The notes: generated by a model not told the origin, from the letters alone. Shown: positions 3,736 through 63,255, counted from the stretch's first letter. The stretch is DNA of 64,000 nucleotides from Paraphysomonas bandaiensis (GCA_965644295.1 CBFFRP010000598.1:22403-86402); one strand, 5' to 3'. Made by a program: numbers and translations.

Positions 3736-4429
3736 TAGCTGAGCATATTAACATGTATTTCAATAATAAGACTCTGAATATGATGTAATATCAATGTTTG
3801 TATTTAAATATTGCATGTTGGGACCTGTAATGCAACTCTAACTTGTACTCTTAAGAACAATATGAATAGTCTACTGCATAGTCAAAATACAATCTAGCTA
3901 CATTACTGTAACGGCTCAAGATTCGGAAGTTTATTAGAGAGCTCAAATTCACATTCGGAATACTATTCTGAACATATGAAGATACATATAGCACATTCAT
4001 AACAGCGTTAAGACAATCCATGATAATGGATGTGTATTGCGAATTATTTAGTAATATTGTCGTATTTCATCTTTTTTTGGACCAGAATTTTTGTATTTTA
4101 AATACACCACAAGTTTCTACAAACGTAAATAGTAAATATTGCGCTTGAACTCGGCATCGAGTACTTTATATAATATCAATCATGATGAAACACTAAATGT
4201 GTCTTCTCTTAATAATGTAATTGTCCCTAGAATAACTATTTCAGTTTTAATTTCCTTCAACTTATACTTCTTCATGAAGATGTTCTTTTCCTGTACGATA
4301 TCAGAGTACAACTGCAAAAATAAATATTCAACAGCAACGAAATAATCGCAATCAAAATAACTGCAATCACCAAGAAACCGGCAATAGAGTACACATAATA
4401 TTGAAACAATTCAGGCAAATAATGCAATT

Positions 4430-4475
4430 GGATAATTGGATATTGGATATTAGCGTATCTTGTTCTCTATCCCTG
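4430..4475. mobile_element. Orphan hAT-type terminal inverted repeat
   Basis: ttgttctctatccctg (4460-4475) matches the end of the hAT relic, ttgttccctatccctg (54511-54526), with one mismatch. The reverse complement starts CAGGG, and subterminal (t)attgga repeats precede it. Confidence 0.5.
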
Positions 4476-5434
4476 CCACTCTTCTCATTCACTTGTGACC
4501 GATTTGTAAACAATGGTGTTCTGCTGTAGTCTTCCCGAATACATTTCTCTAGTCATCCCAAACCTATCCACCAGCGTTTGAAGCATTTGCATAAACAAAG
4601 CTTTTATCGGGGTTATCAACTATAGCTAACTCTCGTGCCTTAACTCTTCCAGCTTATTTTGACAACATATAGCACCAGGTGATTTAGATTCTTCTTCATC
4701 AGATGAATTTTTGTCTTCTGAGATGGGTCTTCAACTTGATACTTGTGAAGCTTCAGAACGTTTCGCCTTTTCATCCAAAATATCACTCATTGTAATGTTA
4801 GAATTGGATATTACACTTCATGTAAACTTTAAACTTCCTTCGTTGCGTACAACGTACTTCCAAGAAAGCATTAAAATTAATCTTAACTCCTTGCAACATA
4901 TTCAGGTAAACAACTGATCTTAACATCTTTTTTCGTATATTCACTAGCCAATCCTATATTATCCATAAATATCTCATGTAGAAATGCATCATAAACCGAA
5001 TGTACTTCCTTTATAACTATCTTCATCTTTTACAAACATCCTAACAATTTATAACTATATCCACCCTTTCCTGCTACATGTTGGCTTCCCTATTCCACAC
5101 ATACCCACTTCAATTGCCCAATATACATTATAACTAACAGCAGAAATCATCATCCCCACACAATTGAGTCATATATATCGAAAACAGTTTATTATCTGTT
5201 TGGAAGTATTGCAAAAAATAAATACACGTTGGTATTCTATGTTAATAAATTTACTTTCACTATACTCCTTCCAGGCCAATCTTGCATGTACACAAAGTTG
5301 TATTCGACACAGGGTTCCGCATACAACAATTTGCTTGACAAGCAAGTCATTTCAACGGAAATAGAATACAACACAAATAACAAGAATCTTATACACAACA
5401 CTATACATTCACAGTATGTACTACTGTACATGCA

Positions 5435-7643: not shown

Positions 7644-9184
7644 CGACCTCACTGCCAAGAGATTACCTGCTCAACATGCATGATACGCACAGGGAGAGGG
7701 AGAAAGGGAGAGGGTGGAAGAGTTATTTGATAGTGTGTAGAGTAGATGGTACTCTAACTAACATACACGTATGTATGTCTCTATATGTATATATGTATGG
7801 GAACTCTGTGTACAGCAGTATCCACTCTCTAACTATGTATATATGTATAGCTATGTATACATACATACACATTCTCTTCGTACCTATAGAGGGACACTGA
7901 CCCAAGTGGACGATGAGACGATAGTATGTCTGTGTGTGTGGTGTATGGTATAGTAGAGTATGTATAGGAGAGTACAGTGATGAGAAACGGTTCTGATCGC
8001 ATTGACGTCGACTGGTATACAGGTACGTATATACTGTACTCGTAGCTCTATCCTGACAGATGAGCAGCCGTCGTGCAAGATAGAAGCCTCCAACATGCTC
8101 CATGAGTGGCCAGAGATCAACACTTGAGTTATGATTGACAAAGTTGTTGCCCTATTCCCACAGTGTGGCCATAGTGTAGGCTCGCTGGCACACCACTTAT
8201 TCTACACAGCCACTCCCCCGCAGGCACATCCGATCACGATCTTGGCTGACCGTATAGATCACGCGTAGATTCTGAGAGCCACCCCACTCCCCGCATTCGT
8301 GTTCTCCTTCACAAATATTACACGAGATTTCTCATAGCTACGCATGACTTATGTATGTAATTCGGACTTTCTCGTGACCACGTGTGGCTTAGTATAGGCA
8401 TAGCATGGTATTGGCAGTGTTTCTCATAGTCATGTGCGACTGACTATACCAGTATAGTGTAGATCTAACTGGCGCCACACTCAGAATACGCCGGGATTTT
8501 AATAGATACTTGTGCGTTTCTTATCTTAGTCAACACTAGCACTGTACCAGGGCACGCACTCAGAATAGGGCAGTTGTAATTACAAAATGCTTAACTGCTG
8601 TATCCAATACTGAAGAGACTGTCAACTGATACTGATAAGAAGCGGCCTAAGGGTATCTTGGGTCCCTGTAAATAGATATTTGTTATTGAATTGCTTTGAG
8701 AACAAGGAAGTGTTATGGGACTCTTCGAGGACTCTTAAATATTGGTCTTGCATCTGCACTAGTGTAAAGTGTGGTACTGCCTCAACCAAGTGGCAGCATT
8801 GTTTCCCCGTCTGTATTACCCATCAATATTATGAGGTCATTATAATGAAGGAATAAAAATTTCTCAGTGTCCAGATGATAAGTGTAAATTTTGATGTGAT
8901 TGGTAGCTCTACAAGCACACCTGAAAATTATTGTGATGCTGATAAGGTTGGAGTGAGAGAAGTAACCGCAATTTGATATATATACCATTGGTAACATATA
9001 TTGTGTCTCCTACGAATAAAGTTCCAACAGTTAATATGTTATTATATATTATGCCCGATGATAGTTGCACGAAGTATATGTGTAGTCTTAAGTGTTCCGT
9101 AGTAGACTTAGATCACTGCTTTCACTTGTCATGATGTACGTTGTACAACGTCCCCAATATACACATCTATGAATATAGCGAGAA

Positions 9185-9253
9185 TGGTCGCACCTTGGTG
9201 CTTGCGGCGATGCACAAGCAGTTCTCGTAGCGTTAAATAGTAGGATATCAGAG
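9185..9253 (+). repeat. Short terminal fragment (copy D) of the hairpin-rich dispersed repeat family
   Basis: gcaccttggtgcttgcggcgatgcacaagcagttctcgtagcgttaaatagtaggatatcagag matches the ends of the copies at 32069, ~33030-33086 and 42843. Confidence 0.75.
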
Positions 9254-9385
9254 TTTGAACTACTAGTAAACGGTAGATGCTTATCTAGTATGATTAGCTT
9301 GTTCTTTTAGCTACTAATCTGGTTCTGACTCTTGAACGCCTATTACTAAATAAACAGACATTTACTACTATACTATTGTAAAGCC

Positions 9386-9508
9386 CAGGGCCTGGTAACC
9401 ATTAATGGTAATATGGTAATGCCTTTAATGAGCCATTAATGGTAATGCCATTATTTTTCCCGGGAACTGGACTACCATTCATGGGCCATTAACGGTTACC
9501 AGGCCCTG
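9386..9508. mobile_element. 123-bp hAT-family MITE with 8-bp target-site duplication
   Basis: TIRs CAGGGCCTGGTAACCATTAATGG / CCATTAACGGTTACCAGGCCCTG, flanked by direct repeat GTAAAGCC (9378-9385 and 9509-9516). Internal repeated (c)cattaatggtaat motifs. Confidence 0.92.
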
Positions 9509-10098
9509 GTAAAGCCTTTGCCGTATAATCAGAATACTTTTCAAGAACTTTTACGGACCGTCTAAAATAATATTTCTACACACAATACTAAAATTGCAAA
9601 TATAACACCATGGAGTACAGTACTATGTTTCTTATTGTGTACTCTGTCATTGCATTAGTGCCAAAGGTACATTGACTTAGACCTCAACACTTGGCAGTAG
9701 AATAGCTACTTGAAGTTATGTAACTAATAATAGCTATATCACAAAACATCTAGACAGTAAGTAGAAATTATATTTTGTCATTATTTTCTCCTAAAAAATA
9801 TTCGATACATATCCCGTAAGTCGATTTAACGGATGCCTTCCTATTGCTGTAGTTGTGGTATAGTGGTATAGTACGGCAGTGTTGATTTCTTAAACACAGG
9901 TTTAAATAGCAACTAGACCTTCTACCCTAACCATTCGACGGCACATATCTATATCTATCGTATGACAAGTTCATCTACAGCTTCCCTGCCACCCTTATTT
10001 GCACACTCTTTTGTTTAAACCCTACAGAGTGGTGGTTGCTATGCAAAACTCCACAAACACATTTCAAAGCGTCACAATAGTCTCTCCAAGAGATGCGA

Positions 10099-30940: not shown

Positions 30941-32068
30941 TACTTACGTGTCTTAAATTTCCTTGCTATAACTCAGAAATATCTTTATTCTGTTGATCCT
31001 TCGTAGTTTTCCTGTTAATCTCTGTTCAGACTGGTCGAAAATGGATGATTTTCTATTGTTTTATATTGATTACAGTAGTCGTTATTATGATTTCAGCAAA
31101 CCTGGATTTATTTGATTGTTTATATTGTTATTATGCAGTGATATATTAATTTGCACTGCGGATTACTGTGTAGCATTCGTAACACAAGCAAACACGTGAG
31201 TCACTAAAACGAGGATTCAGCCTGATTCAGTGAGGTATAAAATGCAACAGCAGCGAGCATTCTTGACAGTCTATTTTAATAACTCTGTAAATCCCTATTT
31301 ATTATATATTCTCTTCTGTGATAAGTAGTCTTATCACGAACAGCGATTGGCACAAGAACGACTGAAATGATGAAAATGATATAGGTCAGCGCCTGTTAAC
31401 CATTAATGATATTGTGGGTTGCTGCCAAATAAACTGGTCACAGATGAACTTTGCTTTCCTAAGCATTCTGTCTATGTGTATTAAAGTTCCACGGTGCAAC
31501 ATATGGTGCACCAATACCCATTACAAGCTAACAGCCAATATTGTCGAAGGAAGTGAGTTGGATTAAGTTTTGCAAGATAGGGTAAAAACTAGGAGGGGAG
31601 GAGGCAAGAAGTCTTTTTTTAGGTATCTTGATCAACTATCTGAGGAAAACTAGCTGTAGAATAATATAATATGATTGAGCTACTTGTTGTATGTGCGTAA
31701 TAAAAGTTTGTAGTAGTTTCACAAAGTTGGGATGTGCCATTTCTAATAAATTGCATACTAAATTGGAATTGAATAGAACTAGGCTTAAAGAATAAAATTT
31801 ATAACAAATTATATAACTGTTAAAACTTTACCCTATTAAATGTCTACTAATTGGTTTTTTAATAGTAAATAAGTAAATAGTATAGAATAATATAAGTAAA
31901 ATAATACAGAAGCTAAACTAAAGCTAGCAAAATATAAAAATACACTGTATATACATAATATATATATATATTTTTTGTATATTATACATATATTATTTAA
32001 GCAATTATAGGCATGCAAGTGCTAAAACTAAACAGAAACCTATCTAATGTTTAATATATATATCGAAT

Positions 32069-32497
32069 TATTTAATGCTACGGAGGCTGCTTGTGCGTCA
32101 CCGGAAGCACCAAGGTGCAATCACTTTCACTCAAAGCAAACGCAGTGAGCAAGCAGAGTGGTGATATACCTGACATCTGCTGACCACTTCAGGATTTTTG
32201 AGTCCTTAAGGTGAACATCCCGGATGCTTGACTGCCGTAGGCAGCCCAATACCCCGGATGCCCTTGAGGTGGGCCTATTTCCAGAGGCCTGTTTATTCGT
32301 CAAACCCCAAAGACGTCTACTACACTGACACTAAAATTTGTGTCCCTTGTACCACACAAGCATTCGGCTATATGTGTAGGCAGAATGGTAGCTCCTGACT
32401 ATAATATATGCGGCTCACGTTAGTTTTCCGGAGAAATATCACCGGTACTTATTTCCCAAAGAGCCCCACGAAAAGGTGCGAGTCCGACTTTGTTGAG
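32069..32497 (-). repeat. Hairpin-rich dispersed repeat, full-length copy A (~430 bp; orientation arbitrary)
   Basis: Aligns by eye over its length with 42843-43221, and in inverted orientation with 32715-33086. Confidence 0.85.
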
Positions 32498-45433: not shown

Positions 45434-46206
45434 TTATGAACACTCCTCGTTATCTTGCGTGTGAGATATCTGAGAAGCGTGAGGAATCGTAGGACTATAC
45501 AAAACGCCATGGATTTTCCATTTTGACGTTAATTCAGTTGGGTAGAAACTACATTTCAATAGAGCACAGTTGTCTAACAAAGAATCCATATCCAGCATAC
45601 GTTTGAAAAATCTAGAATGACCTACTACAATTAAACGAGTTTCAGACCGACTATTCAGCCACTGCTCAAATATACTTATTCGCTCGTCTAGCCTTCTTCT
45701 GGCAAACATTAGCTCAATCGGACTAATTTCAGTTAGACAATCCAAGACAGTGTATTCTTTCTGCGTCGAGCCCAAAGGGAACATTCCGTAACACGTATCT
45801 CGTGCACGCTGCAGGGGAGAATGACATATGAGCTCAGGATCAAAGTTCTCAACGAACTTGTCTTTCATCAATTGTTGCGACACGAGATCTATTTGGTCTC
45901 TTCCGGCTGCAGATACAGGCGCATCTACAGGGGCATATCCCGTCACACGAACCACACACACGAGTCATCAGCACTACCTGTATGCATAGGAATCAATTGT
46001 AGTGTCTTCCAGAGCTGTGACGAGGAGGGCAATTGAAATCTCTGTATACGCGACAGACCCTCTCGAGCAGCTGCCACCTTGACATTCTCCTCCGACTCCG
46101 CATGACGAACTAACACCACAGTCTTAGGGCCCATACGACCACCAGATGCTTGCGGTGACATGCCAATAACCAAAAGTAAGAGAAGGCACAGCGCTCTGTG
46201 TATCAT
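45434..46206 (-). CDS. Histidine phosphatase (phosphoglycerate mutase-like) family protein
   Basis: VVLVRHAESEEN, DAPVSAAGRDQ, SPLQRARDT, IVVGHSRFF. An intron at ~45925-45977 joins the two ORFs. Confidence 0.88.
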
Positions 46207-46236: not shown

Positions 46237-47340
46237 CATACATACATACATACATACATACATACATACATACATACATACATACATACATACATACATA
46301 CATACATACATACATACATACATACATACATACATACATACATACATACATACATACATACATACATACATACATACACACATACATACATACATACATA
46401 CATACATACATACATACATACATACATACATACATACATACATACATACATACATACATACATACATACATACATACATACATACATACATACATACATA
46501 CATACATACATACATACATACATACATACATACATACATACATACATACATACATACATACATACATACATACATACATACATACATACATACATACATA
46601 CATACATACATGCATACATACATACATACATACATACATACATACATACATACATACATACATACATACATACATACATACATGCATGCATACATACATA
46701 CATACATACATACATACATACATACATACATACATACATACATACATACATACATACATACATACATACATACATACATACATACATACATACATACATA
46801 CATACATACATACATACATACATACATACATACATACATACATACATACATACATACATACATACATACATACATACATACATACATACATACATACATA
46901 CATACATACATACATACATACATGCATACATACATACATACATACATACATACATACATACATACATACATACATACATACATACATACATACATACATA
47001 CATACATACATACATACATACATACATACATACATACATACATACATACATACATACATACATACATACATACATACATACATACATACATACATACATA
47101 CATACATACATACATACATACATACATGCATGCATACATACATACATACATACATACATACATACATACATACATACATACATACATACATACATACATA
47201 CATACATACATACATACATACATACATACATACATACATACATACATACATACATACATACATACATACATACATACATACATACATACATACATACATA
47301 CATACATACATACATACATGCATACATACATACATACATA
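46237..47340. repeat. (CATA)n tetranucleotide array, ~1.1 kb
   Basis: Direct inspection; rare CATG/CACA variants. Confidence 0.98.
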
Positions 47341-47414
47341 TGCATAAGTACATCAGCCATGCTTTCAAGGTGCTGGTTTATCAAGTATGTATGTAACTAA
47401 CACTGCTGATTCAA

Positions 47415-48776
47415 ATGCACGAGCTGTCATTGTTTTTCACCCTCATGTGGCTTGTTGCCATTGCTCATTGTGCTGTTTCTGTGAATCGTTTTCTTCGTGT
47501 GTTGCCTGATGTTCGTCGAGGGGAGGTTCACATGCACAGCAGAGGGAATATATCGCTACCGGTAAACACATCGATGCCATTGGATGCTCTGTCATTGGAT
47601 TGTCAGGTGTTTAAGGAGGGGAGATTTAAGTGCTATAGCCCGCGTTTGTTCTCTGAGATTAGACACAGTTGCGGCATATCTGACGAGGATTTCATTTCTT
47701 GTTTGAATGAGTCAACTCTTCAATGCATGAAGCCTGATTCAAAGAGTGGACAGGCGATGTGGCGATCTAGTAATCCTCCGGTTGTGTTTAAGACTATGGT
47801 ATGCAAAAGTTTCTTTATTTGTTGTCATCACGTGCCGTATAGTCCAAGTCTGAATCCCAGTCGATCCGGCGTATTCTCACTGCCTATCACAAACATGTGA
47901 CAACTGGCCCGACGTGCATAAGTACGATAATCGGATTATATCGTATAGGAAGAGTGTATTTGATGGCCAGTAGTGATGTTTTCCCTGAATGTGTTAGGAG
48001 AGATGGACGAATGTATGATCTTAAAGGATCCACTGTGGGACGACGAGCAGCCCAATGGAGTAAGGTAGTACCGTAATTGGCCGTACATTTGTTGGTGTAT
48101 TTTGTGAACGTATTATAAATGCACATGTACCAGAAGTATAGTCTAATGTTGTTCCCTCAAGGTGCTTAAAGACTGTGACGCTATTGATCATACGAAAAAT
48201 TCCAACTCAAGTCTTATGACTCTCAGTAACTACACTGCGACCGCTGTAATGTCGGTGCTTGAGAGGGATGTAGATTTTCTGCGTTCCCATGATTTGATGG
48301 ATTACAGTGTATTGGTGGGGACGGAAAAACGTGTAGGTGACTGGACATTAAATGAAGTCCCAGAGGAGAGTAAAATTGCCCAAACCACGCATAACTATTC
48401 CACTTATGGTCAGAGCAGAATCCTTCCTCCCTCTTTTATGTACAGAAACAAACGGTAAATACTGACATTTTCATTATTATTGCAAGGGATATGACATATT
48501 GACGAAATTTTCAGAGGGAAGATTGCAGTGCTGGGAGCCGTTACCAACAACTCCCATTCAATATACCACATTGGTATAGTAGACTACCTCCAAAGGTGTA
48601 TGCAGTTTTGAAGAATATACTACTGTAGCTTACATATCTGTAGGTACACTCTGCGAAAGAGATTGGAGACTATAGCTAAGGGAATGCGATACAATTCTAG
48701 GAAGATATCTGCAGTACCACCAGACTACTACGCAAGAAGACTTTTAAAATTCATAAGAGTATTAATAGGCTTATAA
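47415..48776 (+). CDS. Phosphatidylinositol phosphate kinase (PIP5K family)
   Basis: FKCYSPRLFSEIR, SKSG, VFKT, MYDLKGS, LKDCD, RDVDFLRSHDLMDYSVLVG, YHIGIVDYLQ, ISAVPPDYYARR. Four introns. Confidence 0.9.
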
Positions 48777-48831
48777 ACCCTCATACCTGACAAACAAACT
48801 TTAAGACCAAAAAACTACAATACAAGATATC

Positions 48832-51800
48832 TTATGTATGTGGCAGAGGTAATGTTATCTTGTTGAGCATGAGAAGTGTACGCATATATTAGTAGCAGTT
48901 TCACGACAGTGAGGAATAACCCTGTGCTTAACAACCACGTACTGATATCATGATGCTTTTAATTTTAACTGCAATCTGAGTCGATGTTATGCTACAGTGT
49001 TGTATATATTGTAGTCCATTATTTGGATGATATGGAGTTTAACAATTGTAAGCAGGATATGTATATTTGTCACGGCCCTTGTGGATTGATAGGTCATAGA
49101 GATCTTGTGTATGTGGCAGAGGTAATGTTATCTTGTTGAGTATGAGAAGTGTATTCATATATTAGTAGCAGTTTCACGACAGTGAGGAATAACCCTGTGC
49201 TTAACAACCACGTACTGATATCATGATGCTTTTAATTTTAACTGCAATCTGAGTCGATGTTATGCTACAGTGTTGTATATATTGTAGTCCATTATTTGGA
49301 TGATATGGAGTTTAACAATTGTAAGCAGGATATGTATATTTGTCACGGCCCTTGTGGATTGATAGGTCATAGAGATCTTGTGTATGTGGCAGAGGTAATG
49401 TTATCTTGTTGAGTATGAGAAGTGTATTCATATATTAGTAGCAGTTTCACGACAGTGAGGAATAACCCTGTGCTTAACAACCACGTACTGATATCATGAT
49501 GCTTTTAATTTTAACTGCAATCTGAGTCGATGTTATGCTACAGTGTTGTATATATTGTAGTCCATTATTTGGATGATATGGAGTTTAACAATTGTAAGCA
49601 GGATATGTATATTTGTCACGGCCCTTGTGGATTGATAGGTCATAGAGATCTTGTGTATGTGGCAGAGGTAATGTTATCTTGTTGAGTATGAGAAGTGTAC
49701 GCATATATTAGTAGCAGTTTCACGACAGTGAGGAATAACCCTGTGCTTAACAACCACGTACTGATATCATGATGCTTTTAATTTTAACTGCAATCTGAGT
49801 CGATGTTATGCTACAGTGTTGTATATATTGTAGTCCATTATTTGGATGATATGGAGTTTAACAATTGTAAGCAGGATATGTATATTTGTCACGGCCCTTG
49901 TGGATTGATAGGTCATAGAGATCTTGTGTATGTGGCAGAGGTAATGTTATCTTGTTGAGTATGAGAAGTGTATTCATATATTAGTAGCAGTTTCACGACA
50001 GTGAGGAATAACCCTGTGCTTAACAACCACGTACTGATATCATGATGCTTTTAATTTTAACTGCAATCTGAGTCGATGTTATGCTACAGTGTTGTATATA
50101 TTGTAGTCCATTATTTGGATGATATGGAGTTTAACAATTGTAAGCAGGATATGTATATTTGTCACGGCCCTTGTGGATTGATAGGTCATAGAGATCTTGT
50201 GTATGTGGCAGAGGTAATGTTATCTTGTTGAGTATGAGAAGTGTATTCATATATTAGTAGCAGTTTCACGACAGTGAGGAATAACCCTGTGCTTAACAAC
50301 CACGTACTGATATCATGATGCTTTTAATTTTAACTGCAATCTGAGTCGATGTTATGCTACAGTGTTGTATATATTGTAGTCCATTATTTGGATGATATGG
50401 AGTTTAACAATTGTAAGCAGGATATGTATATTTGTCACGGCCCTTGTGGATTGATAGGTCATAGAGATCTTGTGTATGTGGCAGAGGTAATGTTATCTTG
50501 TTGAGTATGAGAAGTGTACGCATATATTAGTAGCAGTTTCACGACAGTGAGGAATAACCCTGTGCTTAACAACCACGTACTGATATCATGATGCTTTTAA
50601 TTTTAACTGCAATCTGAGTCGATGTTATGCTACAGTGTTGTATATATTGTAGTCCATTATTTGGATGATGTGGAGTTTAACAATTGTAAGCAGGATATGT
50701 ATATTTGTCACGGCCCTTGTGGATTGATAGGTCATAGAGATCTTGTGTATGTGGCAGAGGTAATGTTATCTTGTTGAGTATGAGAAGTGTACGCATATAT
50801 TAGTAGCAGTTTCACGACAGTGAGGAATAACCCTGTGCTTAACAACCACGTACTGATATCATGATGCTTTTAATTTTAACTGCAATCTGAGTCGATGTTA
50901 TGCTACAGTGTTGTATATATTGTAGTCCATTATTTGGATGATATGGAGTTTAACAATTGTAAGCAGGATATGTATATTTGTCACGGCCCTTGTGGATTGA
51001 TAGGTCATAGAGATCTTGTGTATGTGGCAGAGGTAATGTTATCTTGTTGAGTATGAGAAGTGTATTCATATATTAGTAGCAGTTTCACGACAGTGAGGAA
51101 TAACCCTGTGCTTAACAACCACGTACTGATATCATGATGCTTTTAATTTTAACTGCAATCTGAGTCGATGTTATGCTACAGTGTTGTATATATTGTAGTC
51201 CATTATTTGGATGATATGGAGTTTAACAATTGTAAGCAGGATATGTATATTTGTCACGGCCCTTGTGGATTGATAGGTCATAGAGATCTTGTGTATGTGG
51301 CAGAGGTAATGTTATCTTGTTGAGTATGAGAAGTGTACGCATATATTAGTAGCAGTTTCACGACAGTGAGGAATAACCCTGTGCTTAACAACCACGTACT
51401 GATATCATGATGCTTTTAATTTTAACTGCAATCTGAGTCGATGTTATGCTACAGTGTTGTATATATTGTAGTCCATTATTTGGATGATATGGAGTTTAAC
51501 AATTGTAAGCAGGATATGTATATTTGTCACGGCCCTTGTGGATTGATAGGTCATAGAGATCTTGTGTATGTGGCAGAGGTAATGTTATCTTGTTGAGTAT
51601 GAGAAGTGTACGCATATATTAGTAGCAGTTTCACGACAGTGAGGAATAACCCTGTGCTTAACAACCACGTACTGATATCATGATGCTTTTAATTTTAACT
51701 GCAATCTGAGTCGATGTTATGCTACAGTGTTGTATATATTGTAGTCCATTATTTGGATGATATGGAGTTTAACAATTGTAAGCAGGATATGTATATTTGT

Positions 51801-53725
51801 CACGGCCCTTGTGGATTGATAGGTCATAGAGATCTTGTGTATGTGGCAGAGGTAATGTTATCTTGTTGAGTATGAGAAGTGTACGCATATATTAGTAGCA
51901 GTTTCACGACAGTGAGGAATAACCCTGTGCTTAACAACCACGTACTGATATCATGATGCTTTTAATTTTAACTGCAATCTGAGTCGATGTTATGCTACAG
52001 TGTTGTATATATTGTAGTCCATTATTTGGATGATATGGAGTTTAACAATTGTAAGCAGGATATGTATATTTGTCACGGCCCTTGTGGATTGATAGGTCAT
52101 AGAGATCTTGTGTATGTGGCAGAGGTAATGTTATCTTGTTGAGTATGAGAAGTGTATTCATATATTAGTAGCAGTTTCACGACAGTGAGGAATAACCCTG
52201 TGCTTAACAACCACGTACTGATATCATGATGCTTTTAATTTTAACTGCAATCTGAGTCGATGTTATGCTACAGTGTTGTATATATTGTAGTCCATTATTT
52301 GGATGATATGGAGTTTAACAATTGTAAGCAGGATATGTATATTTGTCACGGCCCTTGTGGATTGATAGGTCATAGAGATCTTGTGTATGTGGCAGAGGTA
52401 ATGTTATCTTGTTGAGTATGAGAAGTGTACGCATATATTAGTAGCAGTTTCACGACAGTGAGGAATAACCCTGTGCTTAACAACCACGTACTGATATCAT
52501 GATGCTTTTAATTTTAACTGCAATCTGAGTCGATGTTATGCTACAGTGTTGTATATATTGTAGTCCATTATTTGGATGATATGGAGTTTAACAATTGTAA
52601 GCAGGATATGTATATTTGTCACGGCCCTTGTGGATTGATAGGTCATAGAGATCTTGTGTATGTGGCAGAGGTAATGTTATCTTGTTGAGTATGAGAAGTG
52701 TATTCATATATTAGTAGCAGTTTCACGACAGTGAGGAATAACCCTGTGCTTAACAACCACGTACTGATATCATGATGCTTTTAATTTTAACTGCAATCTG
52801 AGTCGATGTTATGCTACAGTGTTGTATATATTGTAGTCCATTATTTGGATGATATGGAGTTTAACAATTGTAAGCAGGATATGTATATTTGTCACGGCCC
52901 TTGTGGATTGATAGGTCATAGAGATCTTGTGTATGTGGCAGAGGTAATGTTATCTTGTTGAGTATGAGAAGTGTATTCATATATTAGTAGCAGTTTCACG
53001 ACAGTGAGGAATAACCCTGTGCTTAACAACCACGTACTGATATCATGATGCTTTTAATTTTAACTGCAATCTGAGTCGATGTTATGCTACAGTGTTGTAT
53101 ATATTGTAGTCCATTATTTGGATGATATGGAGTTTAACAATTGTAAGCAGGATATGTATATTTGTCACGGCCCTTGTGGATTGATAGGTCATAGAGATCT
53201 TGTGTATGTGGCAGAGGTAATGTTATCTTGTTGAGTATGAGAAGTGTACGCATATATTAGTAGCAGTTTCACGACAGTGAGGAATAACCCTGTGCTTAAC
53301 AACCACGTACTGATATCATGATGCTTTTAATTTTAACTGCAATCTGAGTCGATGTTATGCTACAGTGTTGTATATATTGTAGTCCATTATTTGGATGATA
53401 TGGAGTTTAACAATTGTAAGCAGGATATGTATATTTGTCACGGCCCTTGTGGATTGATAGGTCATAGAGATCTTGTGTATGCGGCAGAGGTAATGTTATC
53501 TTGTTGAGTATGAGAAGTGTACGCATATATTAGTAGCAGTTTCACGACAGTGAGGAATAACCCTGTGCTTAACAACCACGTACTGATATCATGATGCTTT
53601 TAATTTTAACTGCAATCTGAGTCGATGTTATGCTACAGTGTTGTATATATTGTAGTCCATTATTTGGATGATATGGAGTTTAACAATTGTAAGCAGGATA
53701 TGTATATTTGTCACGGCCCTTGTGG
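48832..53725. repeat. Tandem array of 18 x 273-bp units (last unit truncated)
   Basis: tatgtggcagagg recurs at 48837, 49110, 49383 ... 53478 (period 273). Units are nearly identical. Confidence 0.97.
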
Positions 53726-54526
53726 GTTTGGTCTAGTCATGGACAGTTGGACGTCGGACTCCCACCACTACAGTGCAATATTTGCAACCTTTTGCGACCG
53801 AACCAATACTCCGAATTTGTTATTGTTGTCTTGTAATGTGCAAGAGGATATTGATGACAACACTGTTTTCGATGAAGATCTACCTGATGAAGAGAAATTC
53901 TACGGATTCACTGCTGCGGATTGGTTTGATACTGTCGTAGAAGTTCAGACAGTGATTATTGCAACAATACAGAGGATGATGAAGCTGAAGTTGGCTATGC
54001 GGATAAAATTCTTCAATCAGCTCAAAAACTTAAGAAGCGGAAAGTTGAAATATCTAAGTACAGGTGCACGAGTCATGTAGTATGTACTTCCAATACGTGT
54101 GAACGCCTGTTCAGCGCAGCAAAACTGATTATATCAGTGTTGCGCAAACGTATGCATCCTACTGCACTTAATATGCTGTTGTTTCTGAAAGCTAACCGAC
54201 AGTTGTGGCCGGATGCAAGCATATTTCAATCGATATTGAATGAATATGGTGATGATGATGTCACCGATGATGGCTCAGAGGATGAGTATGAGGAAACTTT
54301 TAATTAGTTAAGAGTAGTGGGTTTGATTATCAAGTGACCTTAGACCTTATAAAATATGGCAAGTACTAAAACTGAAAACTACGGATGTGTTTACTTACTG
54401 ATTAGTCATACTAATATATTGCAATATATTGCAATAGTATTGTAGGGCCGGTTTAAAAAATCCATCAATACTACTGATGGAACGCTACCTAACAATAGTA
54501 TTGCAATATATTGTTCCCTATCCCTG
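53725..54526 (+). mobile_element. Internally deleted hAT transposon relic (transposase fragments + right TIR)
   Basis: FGLVMDSWTSDSHHYSAIFA (first catalytic Asp region). In another frame, CTSNTCERLFSAAKLIISVLRKRMHPTALNMLLFLKANRQLW (hATC dimerisation domain), stop ~54303. Subterminal attgcaat repeats and terminus ...ccctatccctg (reverse complement CAGGG). Confidence 0.85.
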
Positions 54527-55023
54527 CCTAGCCCTGGTTGATTTCTATTCACCAGGACAGTAGCTGTATCCCCTTTACTGCTACTAAAACTTCTCACATT
54601 CACCTACACAACCTTGGGCACCTACCCATCTCGGTAGTCAAATTGGATGACATACATCACTCCGAAACTACCTCAGCCCTCACGAAATGTTCCAGAGCAG
54701 TTTGAAACCCTACAAGTGTAACGCACATCTTCGTCTCACAACCAGCCACTGAGTGATCTAGAAACATCTCCAATATTATGTCGGCATATGCGCATTACGA
54801 TGATCGCGAGTAGCATATGAGGGATATATATACCAAAATATAGCTGCAGCAGAAAGCAGAAACAAGCACTATGTGTCAAGTATGCGCACAGCTCGCGAAC
54901 AGCATCAACAAATTTGATACGAATATCATAACATAATAGGCCTCATATGAGAAAGAAGTATACTCAGCAGAGATTTATCCTCCCACTTCCAGCAACTCCC
55001 AGTGACCAAAACTGACCCGATTG

Positions 55024-55412
55024 TGTATGTATGTATGTATGTATGTATGTATGTATGTATGTATGTATGTATGTATGTATGTATGTATGTATGTATGTAT
55101 GTATGTATGTATGTATGTATGTATGTATGTATGTATGTATGTATGTATGTATGTATGTATGTATGTATGTATGTATGTATGTATGTATGTATGTATGTAT
55201 GTATGTATGTATGTATGTATGTATGTATGTATGTATGTATGTATGTATGTATGTATGTATGTATGTATGTATGTATGTATGTATGTATGTATGTATGTAT
55301 GTATGTATGTATGTATGTATGTATGTATGTATGTATGTATGTATGTATGTATGTATGTATGTATGTATGTATGTATGTATGTATGTATGTATGTATGTAT
55401 GTATGTATGTAT
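55024..55412. repeat. Perfect (TATG)n array, ~390 bp
   Basis: Direct inspection. Confidence 0.98.
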
Positions 55413-55607
55413 CTTTCGGAGGAAAAATATGAGAAAGTTGTTTTAGGAGGTGTGGATATGTAGATATTGTTGGTATGCGATTGGTGGAGTGAGGAGTTGA
55501 AGATTTTCAAGGATTTTCAGTCACTATGAACTCTTGTCGGGTATCTGGACCTGTACTGGAGTTGGTGTTCATCGCCTTTAGATTCATACACGGGTGCACA
55601 AGCTGGT

Positions 55608-57572
55608 ATGTCAGAAGAAGTGGAGTGCCGGGGACATGGAGTCTGCGGTGTGTGTCTGGAGACCTCTGCCACTCTATGTCAGCCCCAGCCTCAGTGCGGT
55701 TCCAGGACTATCTGTCGTAGGTGTCTGGTGGACTATGTTGCCTTCACTGTCGATTCAGCATATAGTGGGCTCTGCCCTACTCTCTACTGTCCTCTATGCC
55801 ATGGCAAAGACAGACATGTGTTGTCATTGAAGTGGCTGTCAGGTATAGTTGGGCAAGACTATATTGTCAAGTATGAGAACTTAGCGTCTATACTGCTATC
55901 CCTTCAGTGTTCTGCTTGCCACTCCAGGAAGTCGGTTTCTATTCAGGTTACGGATGCTGTGAGAACTGCAGCGATGTCAAAATTTCAACATGTTCTCGAT
56001 ACATTTGCTGATTTTGTAAGAGATGTTTCCTACTTTGAGACAGGTGCTATTGATGTTGAAATTTTTTACAATATCTTGTGCGAGAACCATTTCCCTGTTA
56101 TTATTTCAAGCTCCAGTGACTCCGTTGCTTGGGAAACAATGAAAACCGTTCTGGAGTGTGTACTCAACCCAGAACGACGAGCTAACCTCCAACTTAGGTA
56201 CTTCCGTTCTCGTCCTAGGGTATGGACTAGTTGTTGTCATCGTCAAATGTGCTTTCGCTGTCGTACTCGCGAATATCACGAAGGCAAGAGCTGTTCTGTT
56301 GCACTCAGTGGAGATATTGTTTCATGCTCTGGATGCGGAGTGAGTATTGTCAAAGGAGATGGTTGCAATTTAATTACATGCGTGTGCGGATTTACGTTTA
56401 ATTTTGCTACTCAACTTAGTAATGTGCGTGCCGCACATCTATTTCACGAGGCCTTTCCTCATGACACTGCAATGATATGCGTGTCCTCACAGTGTGGTTC
56501 TCTTAGTGGTGAATCATTTGATTTAAAGCAGGCTTTAGCATGGGAAAGTATACACAAGGAAGAGTGTACACGGGCTTACATGCTCTGGTGGAAACAACAA
56601 TTCCCCTGTTGCCCAACTCAGTGTGCTGTTGTGATTGACTCTGGAAGGACGCACTATAACGAGCTGGGACTAGATAAAGCTCGTAAGGCATGGATCAAAT
56701 TCCATCCCGTCGAAACAGAGCGTTGTCGAAGTCAGTTGAATTCAGCCCGTTTTTTGATATTTTCGTCATTGTATCTTGAGGAATCAGAGAGACTGTGTGC
56801 GGCCATGCGGTGGACCTCTACTGTCGCTCTGGAGCACGATGGAATGACGCGCGGGCTGAGTAGTGGACAGCTCACAGACATATATTCCACAGCTAAAATG
56901 TTTCTTGAGGCAACGCCAAATTGGAAAATATTTAAGACTGAGTCATCTGCCAAGCAATTCTTGATTTTATTTGGTTTAAGGCGCGTGGTTTTCCATGCCT
57001 GTTCACCTGGAAAGGACATTTCCACTTATTGCAGTAACCATGAGAACGTTTTCACTGGATTTTTGGCGTCCATTACATTAAATGTTGGAAGCTTGGTTAA
57101 GCGCACTGACAATAGTTTGTTGTCTTCTAATGGTAGAGTGCTAGTTTCACATGGAGACGGGACATATGATGTACAATGGGGAATAGACGGCCCCGTTCAG
57201 CGGGTGCATCGGGCAGGTTTACGTTTTGTATCGCGTGGATTAATTCTAAAGCCATGCTTGGATATGAGTGACCAGCAATACCAGACATTTGAGGCCTATA
57301 TAACGCTTCTTCGCATCTTATGTTCGGAAGAGGGTAATGACATTCGTTCTCGCGAGGGACTGGTGGAATTTTATGAACATCATTGTGGTGGTGTCAATGA
57401 AGCTGCAATTGAAGTCGCCAAGTTGCAGCCTATGGTGGCATTACTTTTGGATCAAAATTGTCGTTCTAAGCTTCAGGAAGGAGAGATTCTTTGCTATGAA
57501 TGCCGCTGGACTGATGTATACTACGCTTGTGCATGGATGGGGGGCAATTTGGAAGCTTTGCAGCGTGCGTGA
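55608..57572 (+). CDS. RBR (RING-IBR-RING)-type E3 ubiquitin ligase-like protein
   Basis: RING1 CGVC...ICRRC...CPLC, IBR-like CCHRQMCFRC...YHEGKSC, RING2 CSGCGVSIVKGDGCNLITCVCG. Intronless 654-aa ORF. Confidence 0.8.
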   Translation: MSEEVECRGHGVCGVCLETSATLCQPQPQCGSRTICRRCLVDYVAFTVDSAYSGLCPTLYCPLCHGKDRHVLSLKWLSGIVGQDYIVKYENLASILLSLQCSACHSRKSVSIQVTDAVRTAAMSKFQHVLDTFADFVRDVSYFETGAIDVEIFYNILCENHFPVIISSSSDSVAWETMKTVLECVLNPERRANLQLRYFRSRPRVWTSCCHRQMCFRCRTREYHEGKSCSVALSGDIVSCSGCGVSIVKGDGCNLITCVCGFTFNFATQLSNVRAAHLFHEAFPHDTAMICVSSQCGSLSGESFDLKQALAWESIHKEECTRAYMLWWKQQFPCCPTQCAVVIDSGRTHYNELGLDKARKAWIKFHPVETERCRSQLNSARFLIFSSLYLEESERLCAAMRWTSTVALEHDGMTRGLSSGQLTDIYSTAKMFLEATPNWKIFKTESSAKQFLILFGLRRVVFHACSPGKDISTYCSNHENVFTGFLASITLNVGSLVKRTDNSLLSSNGRVLVSHGDGTYDVQWGIDGPVQRVHRAGLRFVSRGLILKPCLDMSDQQYQTFEAYITLLRILCSEEGNDIRSREGLVEFYEHHCGGVNEAAIEVAKLQPMVALLLDQNCRSKLQEGEILCYECRWTDVYYACAWMGGNLEALQRA

Positions 57573-58751
57573 GAATGTGCTTTTATTTGGAGTAGACTAT
57601 TATCTGTGAAGGTTCTGCCCCCCCTAGCCTTTTTTAAAATTATAATAGCCTCTGTCGAGGCTTAAGTGCTTCCAGAGCAAGTATAATATCAAGCCATGAT
57701 TATTTATGTATTCCTTCTTGATGATTATCACTGTAGAAAAATAGGAGTACTGGTGTCATTAATCGAATGCCATCATCAAAATCAAACAGCAATATAGTAT
57801 ATATCATGATGTGATAACACTCTCATTGAATTTGAATTTGTTGAAACGCATACAGTTTTACTATCTTTTTTGACATTAAATTAGTTTTTCATTCACTTAC
57901 AACTATCTTACAACTATCTATTACAACTATCTTTTCTCCCTGATTCTTCTGAATTAGAATCATGCATTATTAATCGCCTGCTTGATGACAAAATTATTAA
58001 TGAATTTGTATTAAGTTTTCAAAAAGTCGAAATTAAAAACCAATCACATTTCTTTTTTCAAAACTCGAAATCTTTAAAAGACAATAACTGAAATAATATA
58101 ACAAATCAAAATCTTCAGGAGGCAAAAACTGAAAAAAATTAATTTTAGAGGGCCCCCGAGGGCCGAGGGCCCTTGCGGGCCGCAATAAAACCTTATCAAT
58201 CTTCAATGTAATCATTGCCCTATACAACACTCTTTGTTCCCTGTGGGCCGATATTTCGGGGATACGTTGTTAATGATACATTTAGCTCAAATAATATTGA
58301 TACAGTAACTTCATGTTTTAGTAAAAAATGGACGACTCGGCAATATATTGCTATTTTATAGAGGATGAGTAATGTGCGATTATATATGTAAAATTATTCC
58401 AACTGAATTGATAGCAGATAATTTGTACAAAGACATGATAATTATGATTAAAACTATAATCTATAGACACCTACAGTATAAAAGGTTATACTGTTTCTGC
58501 TAAATTAAGATATAAAACTTGTCATTATATCTAATACGTACACTATTCGAGTCAGATACACAGGTTCACCATTCCCTAGACATAATATCATTTCGTACTA
58601 ACCTCCATTTCATGTTTTCCAGTTCAAGATTGAGAATAATTAACTTATATCGGTTAACGATACAATGATGTACAGCAATCTTTTAGAACTAAGTACAATA
58701 ATAGCACCACACCATTCTACTCACCTACATGGAAATTCTAGAAATAATGCT

Positions 58752-59352
58752 TCAGAATCCTGTATGAATCCTAGACTTCACTCTGTAGATAAGCTCCAGG
58801 ACTTGCTGAATTGATTCTTCTTCAAAGCGAGACAAACTTGGTATCCATGCTAGAGCTTCTTCGACTTCGCAATTCTAAAATGACTTGGTATTAGTAAACC
58901 AGTGAAGAAAGCATTGGCCTTACATATGGGGCGAGATTCGCGAGTTGGGCAACTTCAAATTCATGCAGCCTCGCCATCTTACCATCAATTTTTTGAACTA
59001 ACTCTGATGACGATAACCCACTAAAAAACATTAAGTGTCAACAATAAATAATTGATACATTGTACCCGCGAAGTTCAGAGGCAGCATTTCTCAAAGAGTC
59101 AGTATCAGATGTAGCCGCTAATTTCTGTGTATACTTATGCGTCTTATTAAAAGTGCTGCATCAACAACAGTTACTTATATCATAACGCAAGCATGTAACT
59201 AACTCATTCGTATGTCCCAGCTGCTCATTAACTTTTCTATTTCTCTCCAGCAAAATATGCACCTCATCATTCATTAAAAACTGAACATCATCTGAAAACT
59301 CTTTGCCGAACTGCAACTCAGCAGCATTCCCATCATCATCAGCATCGTCCAT
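58752..59352 (-). CDS. RPB4: RNA polymerase II subunit RPB4
   Basis: NAAELQFGKEF, LMNDEV, TFNKTHKY, LHEFEVAQLANL, EEALAWIPSL. Three short introns. Confidence 0.92.
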
Positions 59353-59422
59353 TACGATATTAAACAGCTAAAATTCAGAAATCACAACAATGAAGTGAGC
59401 TATGCATGCTCTCGAGGCACTC

Positions 59423-59822
59423 TATGTATGTATGTATGTATGTATGTATGTATGTATGTATGTATGTATGTATGTATGTATGTATGTATGTATGTATGTA
59501 TGTATGTATGTATGTATGTATGTATGTATGTATGTATGTATGTATGTATGTATGTATGTATGTATGTATGTATGTATGTATGTATGTATGTATGTATGTA
59601 TGTATGTATGTATGTATGTATGTATGTATGTATGTATGTATGTATGTATGTATGTATGTATGTATGTATGTATGTATGTATGTATGTATGTATGTATGTA
59701 TGTATGTATGTATGTATGTATGTATGTATGTATGTATGTATGTATGTATGTATGTATGTATGTATGTATGTATGTATGTATGTATGTATGTATGTATGTA
59801 TGTATGTATGTATGTATGTATG

Positions 59823-59854
<32 letters not shown>

Positions 59855-60068
59855 TGTATGTATGTATGTATGTATGTATGTATGTATGTATGTATGTATG
59901 TATGTATGTATGTATGTATGTATGTATGTATGTATGTATGTATGTATGTATGTATGTATGTATGTATGTATGTATGTATGTATGTATGTATGTATGTATG
60001 AATGTATGTATGTATGTATGTATGTATGTATGTATGTATGTATGTATGTATGTATGTATGTATGTATG

Positions 60069-60102
<34 letters not shown>

Positions 60103-60612
60103 TGTATGTATGTATGTATGTATGTATGTATGTATGTATGCATGTATGTATGTATGTATGTATGTATGTATGTATGTATGTATGTATGTATGTATGTATG
60201 TATGTATGTATGTATGTATGTATGTATGTATGTATGTATGTATGTATGTATGTATGTATGTATGTATGTATGTATGTATGTATGTATGTATGTATGTATG
60301 TATGTATGTATGTATGTATGTATGTATGTATGTATGAATGTATGTATGTATGTATGTATGTATGTATGTATGTATGTATGTATGTATGTATGTATGTATG
60401 TATGTACGTATGTATGTATGTATGTATGTATGTATGTATGTATGTATGTATGTATGTATGTATGTATGTATGTATGTATGTATGTATGTATGTATGTATG
60501 TATGTATGTATGTATGTATGTATGTATGTATGTATGTATGTATGTATGTATGTATGTATGTATGTATGTATGTATGTATGTATGTATGTATGTATGTATG
60601 TATGTATGTATG
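59423..60612. repeat. (TATG)n array, ~1.2 kb
   Basis: Direct inspection; a few TATA, CATG, AATG and TACG variants. Confidence 0.98.
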
Positions 60613-60813
60613 ATGTATGTATATGTGTGTCGGTTTCATATGGTATTAAGTTAGAGGGTTGTGCTCTAATACTCTATTGCGGAGCTACAGGCGTGTATTG
60701 GGGATCTTCTAAGGGGTCTGAGTGAGATTAATCAGAGTCAAGCTTGTTTATCATGTCTTTTAATGGTAGTGTGTGTTGTGTTGCTGTGTGTGTGTAATGT
60801 GCATTCAGGTTCA

Positions 60814-62835
60814 ATGTCGCTGTCGTCTTCTATGAAGTCTGTTCAAGACTTGCCCAATTTGCCTGGTATTCGACGGTCTGCCCTGAGTAGCAACCCGAAG
60901 CTGTTCAAGGATTATCTTTCAGACACTCTGGGCTCTGAATCCATGCAAAGGAGCGTCTCTGCTGACTTCATCAATGATCCCGAGTACATCCGATCCATCA
61001 AATCTTCATTGAATCCGTATCCCCGTGAAACTCCTAATTTTAATGATATTTCTGGACGCTACAGTTTGTGCTCCAGGCAGCGCGATTCTAGGTCGAATAG
61101 AAAAGCCCTTCCTTATAGTGATATTAGTAATGCCCCTGCCTTCGTTACGAATAAAGACCAAATCTGCAACTTCACTGCAATTTTCACTGAAGATGTCCCA
61201 GAAAATTTGGAGGAGCCGAAGAGAGTACGGGTAGTTGATATCGCGGTCTACGTGACTGATAATTCAATGGAAATACGGGAGCCCTTTGTCCATAACAGCG
61301 GATTAGTTCAAGGCAAACTTCTTCGACGCCATAATGTGCAAAAGCCCGATGGTTCTGGCCATTACACTTTGAAAGATTTTCACGCGGGCGCTATTCTTGA
61401 CATCTATAGCCGTGAATACACTATTCTCAGTTGTAATGATTTTACTAATCGACTCTTGGCAAGTATCGGTGTGGATTTCGGGCAACACTTGCCTACTCCA
61501 GACACAACAGATATTCGACTCATGAAGCTACGAAGATCTACACCCAATATATCTTCCAACGAAAGCTTTTCATCCACTGGACGACCCTTCACTGCTTTGT
61601 CCAAGAGTTTCTACGAGCATGATAAAATGGTACTTCGATTCTTTGGATACTGGGAAGGCAAGGAAGTTCCTAAGCCAATCAAATACTCTGTTCGGATTCA
61701 CTATTATCTAGTTGATGATACCATTGAAATTATATCCGAGTATAGCCGCAATGATGGAAGGGACCGTACACCAAAATTTCTTAGGAAAATGCGCATACTG
61801 AAGCCTAATAATAGCACACCTATAGTTACAACCTCCGCACAGGCGGAATCAGTCGATAGCTCTAATTATTACCATTTCACAGATCTGTATATTGGTGCTG
61901 TGATAAATGTGGTGGGAAATGAAATTCTCATCTATGATGCTGATAAGTTTACCCGAAACTATTACGAGCAGCACCACTTCCCTCTCAGTGAGAGAATACC
62001 AGTCCAGCTGGAGGAGGCACCTAAGAAATACAGCGTGAGCCCTCCCCCCTATAACGGATTTGGCTCAGAGGAAGATTCTCTTCAAACATGCAGCGGAAGC
62101 TTGATGCCCAAAGCTCCGAAGAAAGATGGTCTGAAAGCAAAACTCTATGCTCAGCAGATTCTCCGGTTTCGAATGAAGTTCCGTACACCCAAGGTTGGTA
62201 ATTATTCTGCTCTCATGTAATACCACTTGCCTGCGTGTATGTGAATGCAGTGAAAGCGTAAACCAGTTCTAATTAGTTATTTTCAGCCTGTGGATGCTGC
62301 GAGAGAGTTCAACCTCAAAGTGTTCCTTGAAGATGATACAATTCAGATAAATGAAGTGCCAGTTCGTAACTCTGGTTTCGGGGCAGGTAAGTTCTTGTCT
62401 CGTTCCCGTCAAAAGCACAAGGATGGCCGCCGGATCGTTCCGGGGGACATAGTACTTGGGACAGTGCTCTTCATTCAGTCTTATGAATTCATTGTCGTTG
62501 ATGCCGATGAGTACTCTCTTAAATACATGGAGCAGAATCCTGAGATATGGAAAGAGAGTTCCCTTGAGCATATTGCCATGAAGCTCCGAGCTCGTGAGGA
62601 TCAATTAAGAGATACTCTTGTGAAGTTGAAAGACCGCGCTCTAGAGGATGCCCCGTACGATGAAATTAACGACCTGTTGATTGAGGCAGGCATAGTGCTC
62701 ACTACCCAGGAATCTCTGACTCTTATGAGGGCAATCGATAAGCAGAGAAAAGGTCGCGCCAAATTTTTCAGAATATTTAGGATTATCAGTGAAGATGATA
62801 TGTTTCAGTCATGGAGCAGGAAATTCTCTGCATAA
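60814..62835 (+). CDS. EFHC1/EFHC2/Rib72-like axonemal protein (3 DM10 domains + EF-hand-like tail)
   Basis: DNSMEIREPFVHNSGLVQGKLLRRH, VLRFFGYW...YYLVDDTIEI, PPPYNGFGSEEDSLQTC, FLEDDTIQINEVPVRNSGFGAGKFL. Intron ~62194-62286. Confidence 0.92.
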
Positions 62836-63255
62836 GCACACCTGCTCCGGAGTACGCGAAAATAAAGAGAGAATGCATGATGCAAAATTTGGGTGTGTCA
62901 CCCGTAGTTAGTGAGGGATATATACACGCTTTTTATCTTCATAGATACGTTAATGTTATTTTTTGCATTTGTTCTGCATATGATGAAAATTTACAATAAG
63001 ACTACAAACTCTTGTAGGTAGACTAATCATTCAACAAAATACTTATAATGATAAGTTTAAATCAATTCAAACGCTGGAGTATTTAACATCTATATACTAC
63101 TCATGAGTAGAGGGGAATTTCGGATGCTCCAATGCTTATTGGTATTTGGAGTTGCTTACTTTTTCCTATCGATGCTATTTTCGCGCATTGTAGAAATAAT
63201 CAAATAAAGTTATGTACGATATGGTATCGATAATACCTTCTTTGTTTGTAGAACA

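Follow-up and report, generated by a model that had tools for sequence, protein, structure and literature searches.

Long (TATG)n arrays on the promoter side of genes in Paraphysomonas bandaiensis as candidate add-on spacers

The tetranucleotide TATG is repeated in long tandem arrays in the genome of the marine flagellate Paraphysomonas bandaiensis, and three of these arrays are found within a stretch of 64,000 nucleotides (GCA_965644295.1, CBFFRP010000598.1:22403-86402; this whole stretch is termed the window, and positions are those of the window unless another contig or locus is named). The explanation we favour, at a probability of about 0.6, is that the arrays are lineage-specific spacers on the promoter side of genes, hyper-expanded in DNA that is not traversed by polymerase, and that the flanking genes keep their own core promoters outside the repeat. 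The arrays of the window, as defined by Tandem Repeats Finder and direct reading, are:

46237-47340, (CATA)276 on the plus strand, TATG on the minus strand, 98% matches (array 1)
55024-55412, (TATG)97 on the plus strand, 100% pure (array 2)
59423-60622, (TATG)301 on the plus strand, 98% matches (array 3)

An initial reading made from the DNA alone (the sequence-only reading) had placed the three arrays in promoter regions, and Tandem Repeats Finder reproduced their coordinates at a purity of 98-100%. Array 3 is pure up to 60612, and its final 10 bp are degenerate, with one TATATG. All three arrays have sharp edges on direct reading, and each faces at least one gene 5' end. Array 1 is located between a phosphatase gene (minus) and PIP5K (plus), in the orientation opposite to that of arrays 2 and 3. 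Array 2 is in a tandem gap, upstream of an RBR-like gene, and array 3 separates RPB4 (minus) from EFHC (plus). Arrays 1 and 3 each fill nearly the whole spacer of a head-to-head gene pair, as had been noticed at the outset.

Arrays and gap orientation

The assembly that was searched consists of 62.56 Mb in 669 contigs, in which the array edge pattern (TATG)8+V has 800 matches. A sample of 30 arrays was used, consisting of the first ones listed by this edge pattern in twenty 10-kb stretches, plus the three of the window. Coding open reading frames (ORFs) were recognized by a codon-usage log-likelihood trained on 34 long ORFs, where a score above 10 was given to 168 real as against 4 shuffled ORFs. 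Arrays with a coding ORF on both sides, 27 of the 30, could be classified.

Nineteen of these 27 arrays are in divergent gaps, seven are in tandem gaps and one, of 72 bp, is in a convergent gap. The excess of divergent gaps has a binomial p of 9e-7 against an expectation of 0.25, of 3e-6 when the window arrays are left out, and of 3e-8 against the bp-weighted divergent share. Divergent gaps also outnumber tandem gaps beyond the per-promoter expectation (19 vs 7, p = 0.014). Counted by flank, 48 of 57 face a 5' end (p = 8e-8), and the enrichment of (TATG)n near 5' ends that had been proposed is borne out on the 30-array sample. Even the tandem gaps follow the pattern: in six of the seven, the array is 15-324 bp from the 5' ORF edge of the downstream gene and 720-5482 bp from the upstream gene.

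The related statement that no array falls in a 3' or convergent region is true of the window, and 1 of 27 arrays in the sample is convergent. Convergent gaps are roomy (23 gaps, 33 kb in total, median 1118 bp) and contain 12 TATG seeds of 8-11 bp and a single 72-bp array. A limitation of seeds was considered as the cause of this scarcity and was rejected, since short TATG seeds are also present in convergent gaps.

Transcript starts

MMETSP/JGI and Logan transcript contigs were mapped to the window, the MMETSP ones at 99.5-99.9% identity, and this gave transcript starts for EFHC and the RBR-like gene, two of the five that flank arrays. The RBR-like mRNA is colinear with the window in two independent assemblies, at 55482-57698 (JGI/MMETSP, L038) and at 55513-57624 (Logan SRR6342619, L031), and its 5' ends are 69 and 100 bp past the edge of array 2. 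The EFHC transcript (L032) has its 5' end at 60662, 39 bp past array 3. No repeat unit is present in any transcript contig of either gene. The true starts are bracketed between the array edge and the transcript 5' ends; assemblies can stop short. The repeat is thus upstream of the start and outside the transcript in both genes, as is the case in promoter microsatellites, and the large share of flanks that face 5' ends conforms to this.

Exact-word scans of metagenome contigs gave no match to RPB4 or PIP5K transcripts, and a word-based protein search with the 175-aa phosphatase exon matched nothing, not even the exon itself. One of ten single-exon proteins beside arrays was found in the transcript collection, and this is a transposase. 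No shared core-promoter motif between array edge and ATG is visible in the approximately 45 flanks that were inspected.

Spacer or promoter

An array is present in two of the six divergent gaps of the window. In divergent gaps with an array, what remains outside the repeat has a median length of 558 bp, vs 494 bp for divergent gaps that are array-free. Because this remainder is as long as an array-free gap, the array appears to have been added to an ordinary promoter region and not to have replaced it. The EFHC promoters of two environmental relatives are 345 bp (L062, 65% protein identity) and 563 bp (L063, 59%) in length, and there is no TATG run in either of these upstream gaps.

It had been suggested that the array may itself be the bidirectional promoter. 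The promoter-side location stands; the identity of array and promoter does not. Transcript starts are 39-100 bp outside the element and not inside it (two of the five flanking genes), and the element is neither a regular nor a conserved part of promoters, being found in a minority of the divergent gaps and missing from EFHC of the relatives. The evidence thus favours the arrays as add-on spacers that abut core promoters and supports the suggested promoter role only in part, with an overlap of the RPB4 promoter and the array edge being possible.

The first ATG of the nearest coding ORF is at a median distance of 253 bp from the array edge, with a minimum of 45 bp. ATGs less than 100 bp from an array are found in 5 of 18 cases on the CATA-sense side and in none of 20 on the TATG-sense side (Fisher p = 0.017, a small sample). 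This pattern fits a TATG-sense repeat that has to stay out of the mRNA, where it would present an upstream AUG every four bases. Only with its most upstream ATG as the true start would the phosphatase depart from this pattern. A search for a second haplotype of the array 3 locus returned only the window locus.

Flanking genes and distances

The genes next to the arrays, and the spacers between them, are as follows:

45434-46206, minus strand, 5' part of the His-phosphatase gene, two ORFs with an intron near 45950 (Pfam His_Phos_1, E = 1.1e-4, on 45434-45961)
47341-47414, plus strand, spacer from array 1 to the PIP5K ATG (47415), 74 bp, from sequence
47415-48770, plus strand, PIP5K gene, approximately 4 exons, intact (Pfam PIP5K, E = 5.9e-10, on 48162-48458)
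55413-55481, plus strand, spacer from array 2 to the RBR-like transcript 5' end, 69 bp
55482-57698, plus strand, RBR-like cysteine-rich transcribed unit, unspliced, with a 654-aa ORF from 55608 (transcript contigs)
58755-59352, minus strand, RPB4-like gene, approximately 4 short exons, ATG at 59352 (ORFs and sequence)
59353-59422, minus strand, spacer from the RPB4 ATG to array 3, 70 bp, from sequence
60623-60661, plus strand, spacer from array 3 to the EFHC transcript 5' end, 39 bp, room left for a core promoter
60662-63028, plus strand, EFHC (DM10) transcribed unit, exons 60662-60767, 60808-62193 and 62285-63028 (transcript L032)

The gene names given by the sequence-only reading are upheld by Pfam for the phosphatase, PIP5K and EFHC. 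The RPB4 name has a sub-threshold PF03874 match (E = 0.003, on exon 58894-59031), and its N-terminal motif is presumably that of RPB4 as well. The RBR-like gene has no Pfam match, and its label is a reading of cysteine patterns. The phosphatase has the RHAES catalytic motif in its first exon, and the most upstream in-frame ATG, at 46206, is separated from array 1 by 30 bp; two later ones in frame, at 75 and 102 bp, could equally well be the start. PIP5K exons of a relative map by tblastn to 47625-47855, 47873-48067 and 48546-48770. DM10 matches in EFHC are at 60763-62220 and 62290-62835 on the plus strand (E = 1.8e-51), and an MMETSP1103 protein under the label Paraphysomonas, the name of a colourless chrysophyte, matches the EFHC protein at 100% identity.

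Four of the distances between array and ATG that had been given in the sequence-only reading were reproduced on measurement: approximately 30 bp for the phosphatase (30 bp, if the most upstream in-frame ATG is taken), 75 bp for PIP5K (74 bp), 70 bp for RPB4 (70 bp) and 195 bp for the RBR-like gene (195 bp, from the ATG at 55608). The fifth, approximately 200 bp for EFHC, has to be corrected; the coding start set by transcript L032 is at 60753, 130 bp past the end of array 3. The first EFHC intron (60768-60807) is 40 nt long and comes after only five codons, so ORF-based calls of start codons in this genome can miss by one exon. It should also be pointed out that the 70-bp RPB4 spacer must hold the 5' untranslated region (UTR), and the core promoter as well unless this overlaps the array.

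A second EFHC copy is present on another contig (G000:C65:2702-3094). It has 76% DNA identity to the window gene and is transcribed (L064, L033-L037), and its protein is in the same 90%-identity cluster as the window EFHC. P0130/L064 was considered as the transcript of the window EFHC and was rejected, as it represents this paralogue.

Motif and array properties

The (TATG)10 motif has 127,451 overlapping matches in the genome (62,434 + 65,017), approximately 0.55 Mb or 0.9% of the total. There are no matches to (CA)20 genome-wide, (TA)20 is present at 2 loci and (GATA)10 at 4, which makes the TATG motif more than 1000 times commoner than other microsatellites. TATG seeds are found in all non-coding DNA, at 1.4-2.0 eight-mers per kb vs 0.1-0.4 for other motif classes. 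A better response to torsional stress would be expected of (CA)n and (TA)n, and yet these are absent, which hints at a motif-specific factor or a repair bias.

Array length in the sample ranges from 72 to 1367 bp, with no favoured size. The interruption rate is 0.5%, and this, together with the sharp edges, suggests a fast turnover of arrays. The consensus T-A-T-G alternates purine and pyrimidine as described in the sequence-only reading; its further claim, that most variants keep the alternation, is weakened. Isolated substitutions in the 30 arrays (16,089 bp) consist of 28 transitions and 28 transversions, and therefore half of them break the alternation. Phase jumps are of two bases in 24 instances and of one or three bases in 4. 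Short (TAGG)n runs are located at the 3' end of the TATG strand in 5 of the 30 arrays (L047 at 6883-6960, L048, L052, L054 and L056) vs 1 of 30 at the 5' end. This bias is a possible sign of polarity in array decay or growth and is too weak to build on.

A Z-DNA conformation, one of the mechanisms offered earlier, found no support. The alternating consensus is that of a Z-DNA tract, but the alternation is not kept where the sequence varies, the favourable CG and CA motifs are not used, and the genome lacks (CA)n, the better Z-former. The Z-alpha domain (PF02295) had no match in the genome, and the same search matched no control genome either. Slipped-hairpin expansion was rejected, as both single strands fold to 0 kcal/mol. 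In a nearest-neighbour profile of the 64-kb window, with hand-entered stability parameters, the arrays have a duplex stability of -1.09 kcal/mol per step vs a window mean of -1.29, and only one other stretch of the window (31698-32090) is as unstable over 200 bp. On this profile the arrays would be the obvious unwinding sites under negative superhelical stress.

Proposed mechanism

In the reading that we favour, arrays would grow by slippage or unequal exchange from the short seeds that are widespread in non-coding DNA. A large size would be reached and kept only in negatively supercoiled DNA that is never read through by polymerase II, and the negatively supercoiled wake of initiating polymerases would be the site of growth to hundreds of units. 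The twin-domain model predicts the ranking divergent > tandem >> convergent, as negative supercoils enter a divergent gap from both sides and positive ones enter a convergent gap. Arrays would be purged from transcribed DNA, one reason perhaps being the AUG that a TATG-sense strand would place every 4 nt in a 5' UTR. The core promoter and start of each flanking gene would be within 40-100 bp just outside the array; the array would push two promoters apart, and initiation would be defined elsewhere. As the least stable long duplex tracts locally, the arrays are probably easily unwound, nucleosome-poor buffers or insulators, and any such effect would be a by-product or modulator and not a requirement. 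That TATG alone expands points to a motif-specific repair bias or binding factor. A regulatory effect by nucleosome exclusion, torsional buffering or promoter insulation is plausible from published precedents (PMC5622345, PMC13710865).

Several points weigh against this interpretation. A model based on torsion and the lack of read-through leaves the TATG-only expansion unexplained. Array lengths are lengths as assembled, the sample consists of 30 arrays, and orientation comes from the codon-usage ORF score and not from gene models, so that some tandem gaps may be introns. There are only two start sites, both from assembled transcripts, and a start at the very edge of the array is possible. In addition, the core promoters of RPB4 (70 bp), PIP5K (74 bp) and possibly the phosphatase (30 bp) may overlap the repeat.

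Alternative explanations

The array could be a selected device of promoter architecture that is needed for normal expression, either an insulator that excludes nucleosomes or absorbs supercoils, or a region of upstream activation, and it might work via a dedicated protein that binds the multimerised TATG word. We regard this milder version of what the sequence-only reading had proposed as possible but rather unlikely. The extreme motif exclusivity is in its favour, as is the strictly promoter-side location with its preference for divergent gaps, and few duplex tracts in the window are as unstable as the arrays. Array edges are 39-74 bp from transcript starts or ATGs, and therefore the upstream promoter region of these genes physically is the array. 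There are precedents as well: an (ATGT)n repeat in an insect promoter attracts chromatin modifiers depending on its length (PMC13710865), and promoter repeats that form Z-DNA or undergo stress-induced duplex destabilization (SIDD) displace nucleosomes (reviewed in PMC5622345). However, most promoters have no array, nor do the orthologous promoters of relatives, and no size is preferred among arrays of 72 to 1367 bp. The non-array promoter DNA is not shortened, and the equal numbers of transitions and transversions reveal no purifying pattern in the interruptions. Long arrays silence in the insect precedent, whereas here genes beside 300-unit arrays are expressed. An improbable variant is that the array is the bidirectional core promoter, where transcription of both strands would begin within or next to the repeat, for example by TBP-like binding to TATG/TATA-like words. 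RPB4, PIP5K and possibly the phosphatase do have almost no other upstream DNA, and the TATATG in the degenerate edge of array 3 is approximately 40 bp upstream of the EFHC transcript start. Yet both the EFHC and the RBR-like transcript contigs have their 5' ends beyond the arrays and are free of repeat units, initiation within an array on the TATG-sense side would fill the 5' UTR with AUGs, and arrays are missing from most promoters and from the EFHC promoters of the relatives.

It is very improbable that the arrays are passive debris that transposons have seeded or spread, or artefacts of long-read assembly. Two of the 30 sampled arrays touch elements with terminal inverted repeats (TIRs), those of loci L047 and L039, but an all-against-all BLAST comparison reveals no repeat shared among the flanks of the others. 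The arrays have irregular internal variants, both orientations and unique flanks, and in one case a transposon interrupts the array, its target duplication being intact; such features would not arise from collapse or expansion during assembly. There is hardly any likelihood that the arrays serve as dense ApT substrates for promoter marking by N6-methyladenine (6mA). They offer one ApT per 4 bp, and at least one MT-A70-family gene is present in the genome. This is the one match found (G000:C68:13755-14093), which may or may not be a writer of the AMT1 type. Where it is known in eukaryotes, ApT 6mA marks linkers downstream of the start site in transcribed DNA, whereas the arrays are upstream and untranscribed, and the densest ApT repeat, (TA)n, is absent from the genome as arrays.

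Relation to known promoter repeats

Promoter microsatellites as such are already known. Tandem repeats in yeast promoters reportedly set nucleosome-poor regions and tune expression, a finding ascribed to Vinces et al. in 2009. They resemble the TATG arrays in having short units upstream of starts, a highly mutable length, AT-rich sequence and low nucleosome affinity or stability. The yeast repeats are said to be of many motifs and tens of bp long, with about a quarter of promoters carrying one; here, in contrast, one tetranucleotide monopolises microsatellite DNA (approximately 0.9%), with arrays of up to 1.4 kb and the ranking divergent > tandem >> convergent. Poly(dA:dT) tracts and (GA)n/GAGA-factor elements are signals for nucleosome depletion at promoters, and they also are simple sequences that mark the promoter-upstream region genome-wide. 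These are 10-30 bp in length, are found at most promoters and have shown mechanisms, whereas TATG arrays are long, lineage-specific and present in a minority of promoters.

A repeat of the same class is the (ATGT)n of the Plutella xylostella ABCC2 promoter, which, once it has reached 27 units or more, recruits E(z), with silencing of the gene as the result (PMC13710865). ATGT is equivalent to TATG, and the promoter location and expandable length are alike. The Plutella repeat concerns one locus, which is silenced, whereas the arrays described here, of 100-340 units, have transcribed genes (EFHC, RBR-like) or a presumably essential one (RPB4) beside them. Z-DNA-forming poly(AC)/poly(CG) repeats are found in promoters such as those of CSF1 and HO-1 (reviewed in PMC5622345). 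These also are alternating purine-pyrimidine tracts upstream of the start, where transcription yields negative supercoiling. They differ from the TATG arrays, in which half of the dinucleotide steps are TA, a poor Z-former, and the alternation is not preserved; (CA)n arrays are not present.

In the literature that was searched, there is no report of a genome whose microsatellite DNA is nearly all made up of one tetranucleotide (at approximately 0.9% of the genome), nor of a repeat confined to the non-transcribed side of promoters with the ranking divergent > tandem >> convergent. Since this ranking is a prediction of the twin-supercoiled-domain model, Paraphysomonas could be a natural test, replicated a thousand-fold, of whether transcription torsion or polymerase passage governs repeat expansion. 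The arrays could also be used to determine whether long repeats buffer or insulate neighbouring promoters.

Transposons and rearrangement

The two TIR elements bear on the origin of the arrays. At L047 (G000:C15:87070-97069), a 3.4-kb TIR element at 3227-6596 is situated in phase inside a (TATG)n array, with a TA target duplication. Its TIR tip is GGGACCGGTGCC, and it has no coding ORF by codon-usage score. An origin of the arrays as transposon-derived satellites does not agree with this locus, as the element was inserted into a pre-existing array. At L039 (G000:C2:61462-71461), a two-gene Tc1/IS630 element of 3.4 kb (5604-8992) with 195-bp TIRs encodes a DDE_3 transposase and a 513-aa ORF of unknown nature. 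To its left is (CATA)n and to its right (TATG)n (4986-10000). The mutual inversion of these arrays parallels that of the TIRs and would not result from a simple insertion into a single array. Copies of the element in Tara metagenomes, 99.3-99.5% identical and at another site, have only TACATAC before the TIR. Perhaps the L039 arrays have grown from a TIR-tip seed beside the element's own promoters. When 400-bp array flanks were compared all against all, the L039 and L047 TIR pairs were the only matches; because the other flanks share no sequence, the transposons are guests in the arrays and not their source.

Gene order in one relative provides a lead to rearrangement. In L063 (4076-7917), EFHC (plus) is head-to-head with PIP5K (minus) across 563 bp, and for both of the PIP5K exon peptides of this relative the window PIP5K is the best or only match in the genome. 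In the window, PIP5K (plus) follows array 1 and EFHC (plus) follows array 3, 12 kb apart, and arrays 1 and 3 are mutually inverted. An inversion of the 12 kb between these arrays would restore the PIP5K/EFHC pair, which is consistent with recombination between inverted arrays. The lead comes from L063; the closer relative L062 has a different partner gene for EFHC.

This raises the question of whether (TATG)n constitutes a genome-wide architectural system, in which a repair bias or factor specific to the motif would allow TATG alone to expand, and the arrays would furnish promoter gaps with torsional buffers or insulators between divergent genes and at the same time provide recombination substrates that invert segments. 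Roughly a thousand near-identical arrays in both orientations would then swap promoter partners without parting a gene from its promoter. Arrays 1 and 3 fit one such event, although we consider the system as a whole doubtful. In practical terms, the arrays are landing pads for transposons and possible inversion breakpoints, and they are a hazard for genome assembly and annotation.

Other repeats

A 273-bp unit is repeated 18 times at 99% identity at 48825-53725, beginning approximately 55 bp past the last PIP5K exon. Each unit holds an ATG-initiated ORF start identical to the start of a 151-aa ORF at 53625-54080, which has no Pfam match. In another part of the genome (G000:C53:1174-8079), the array edge pattern recurs every 2291 bp (1174, 3465, 5756 and 8047), and this spacing suggests a 2.3-kb tandem repeat whose unit holds a TATG array.

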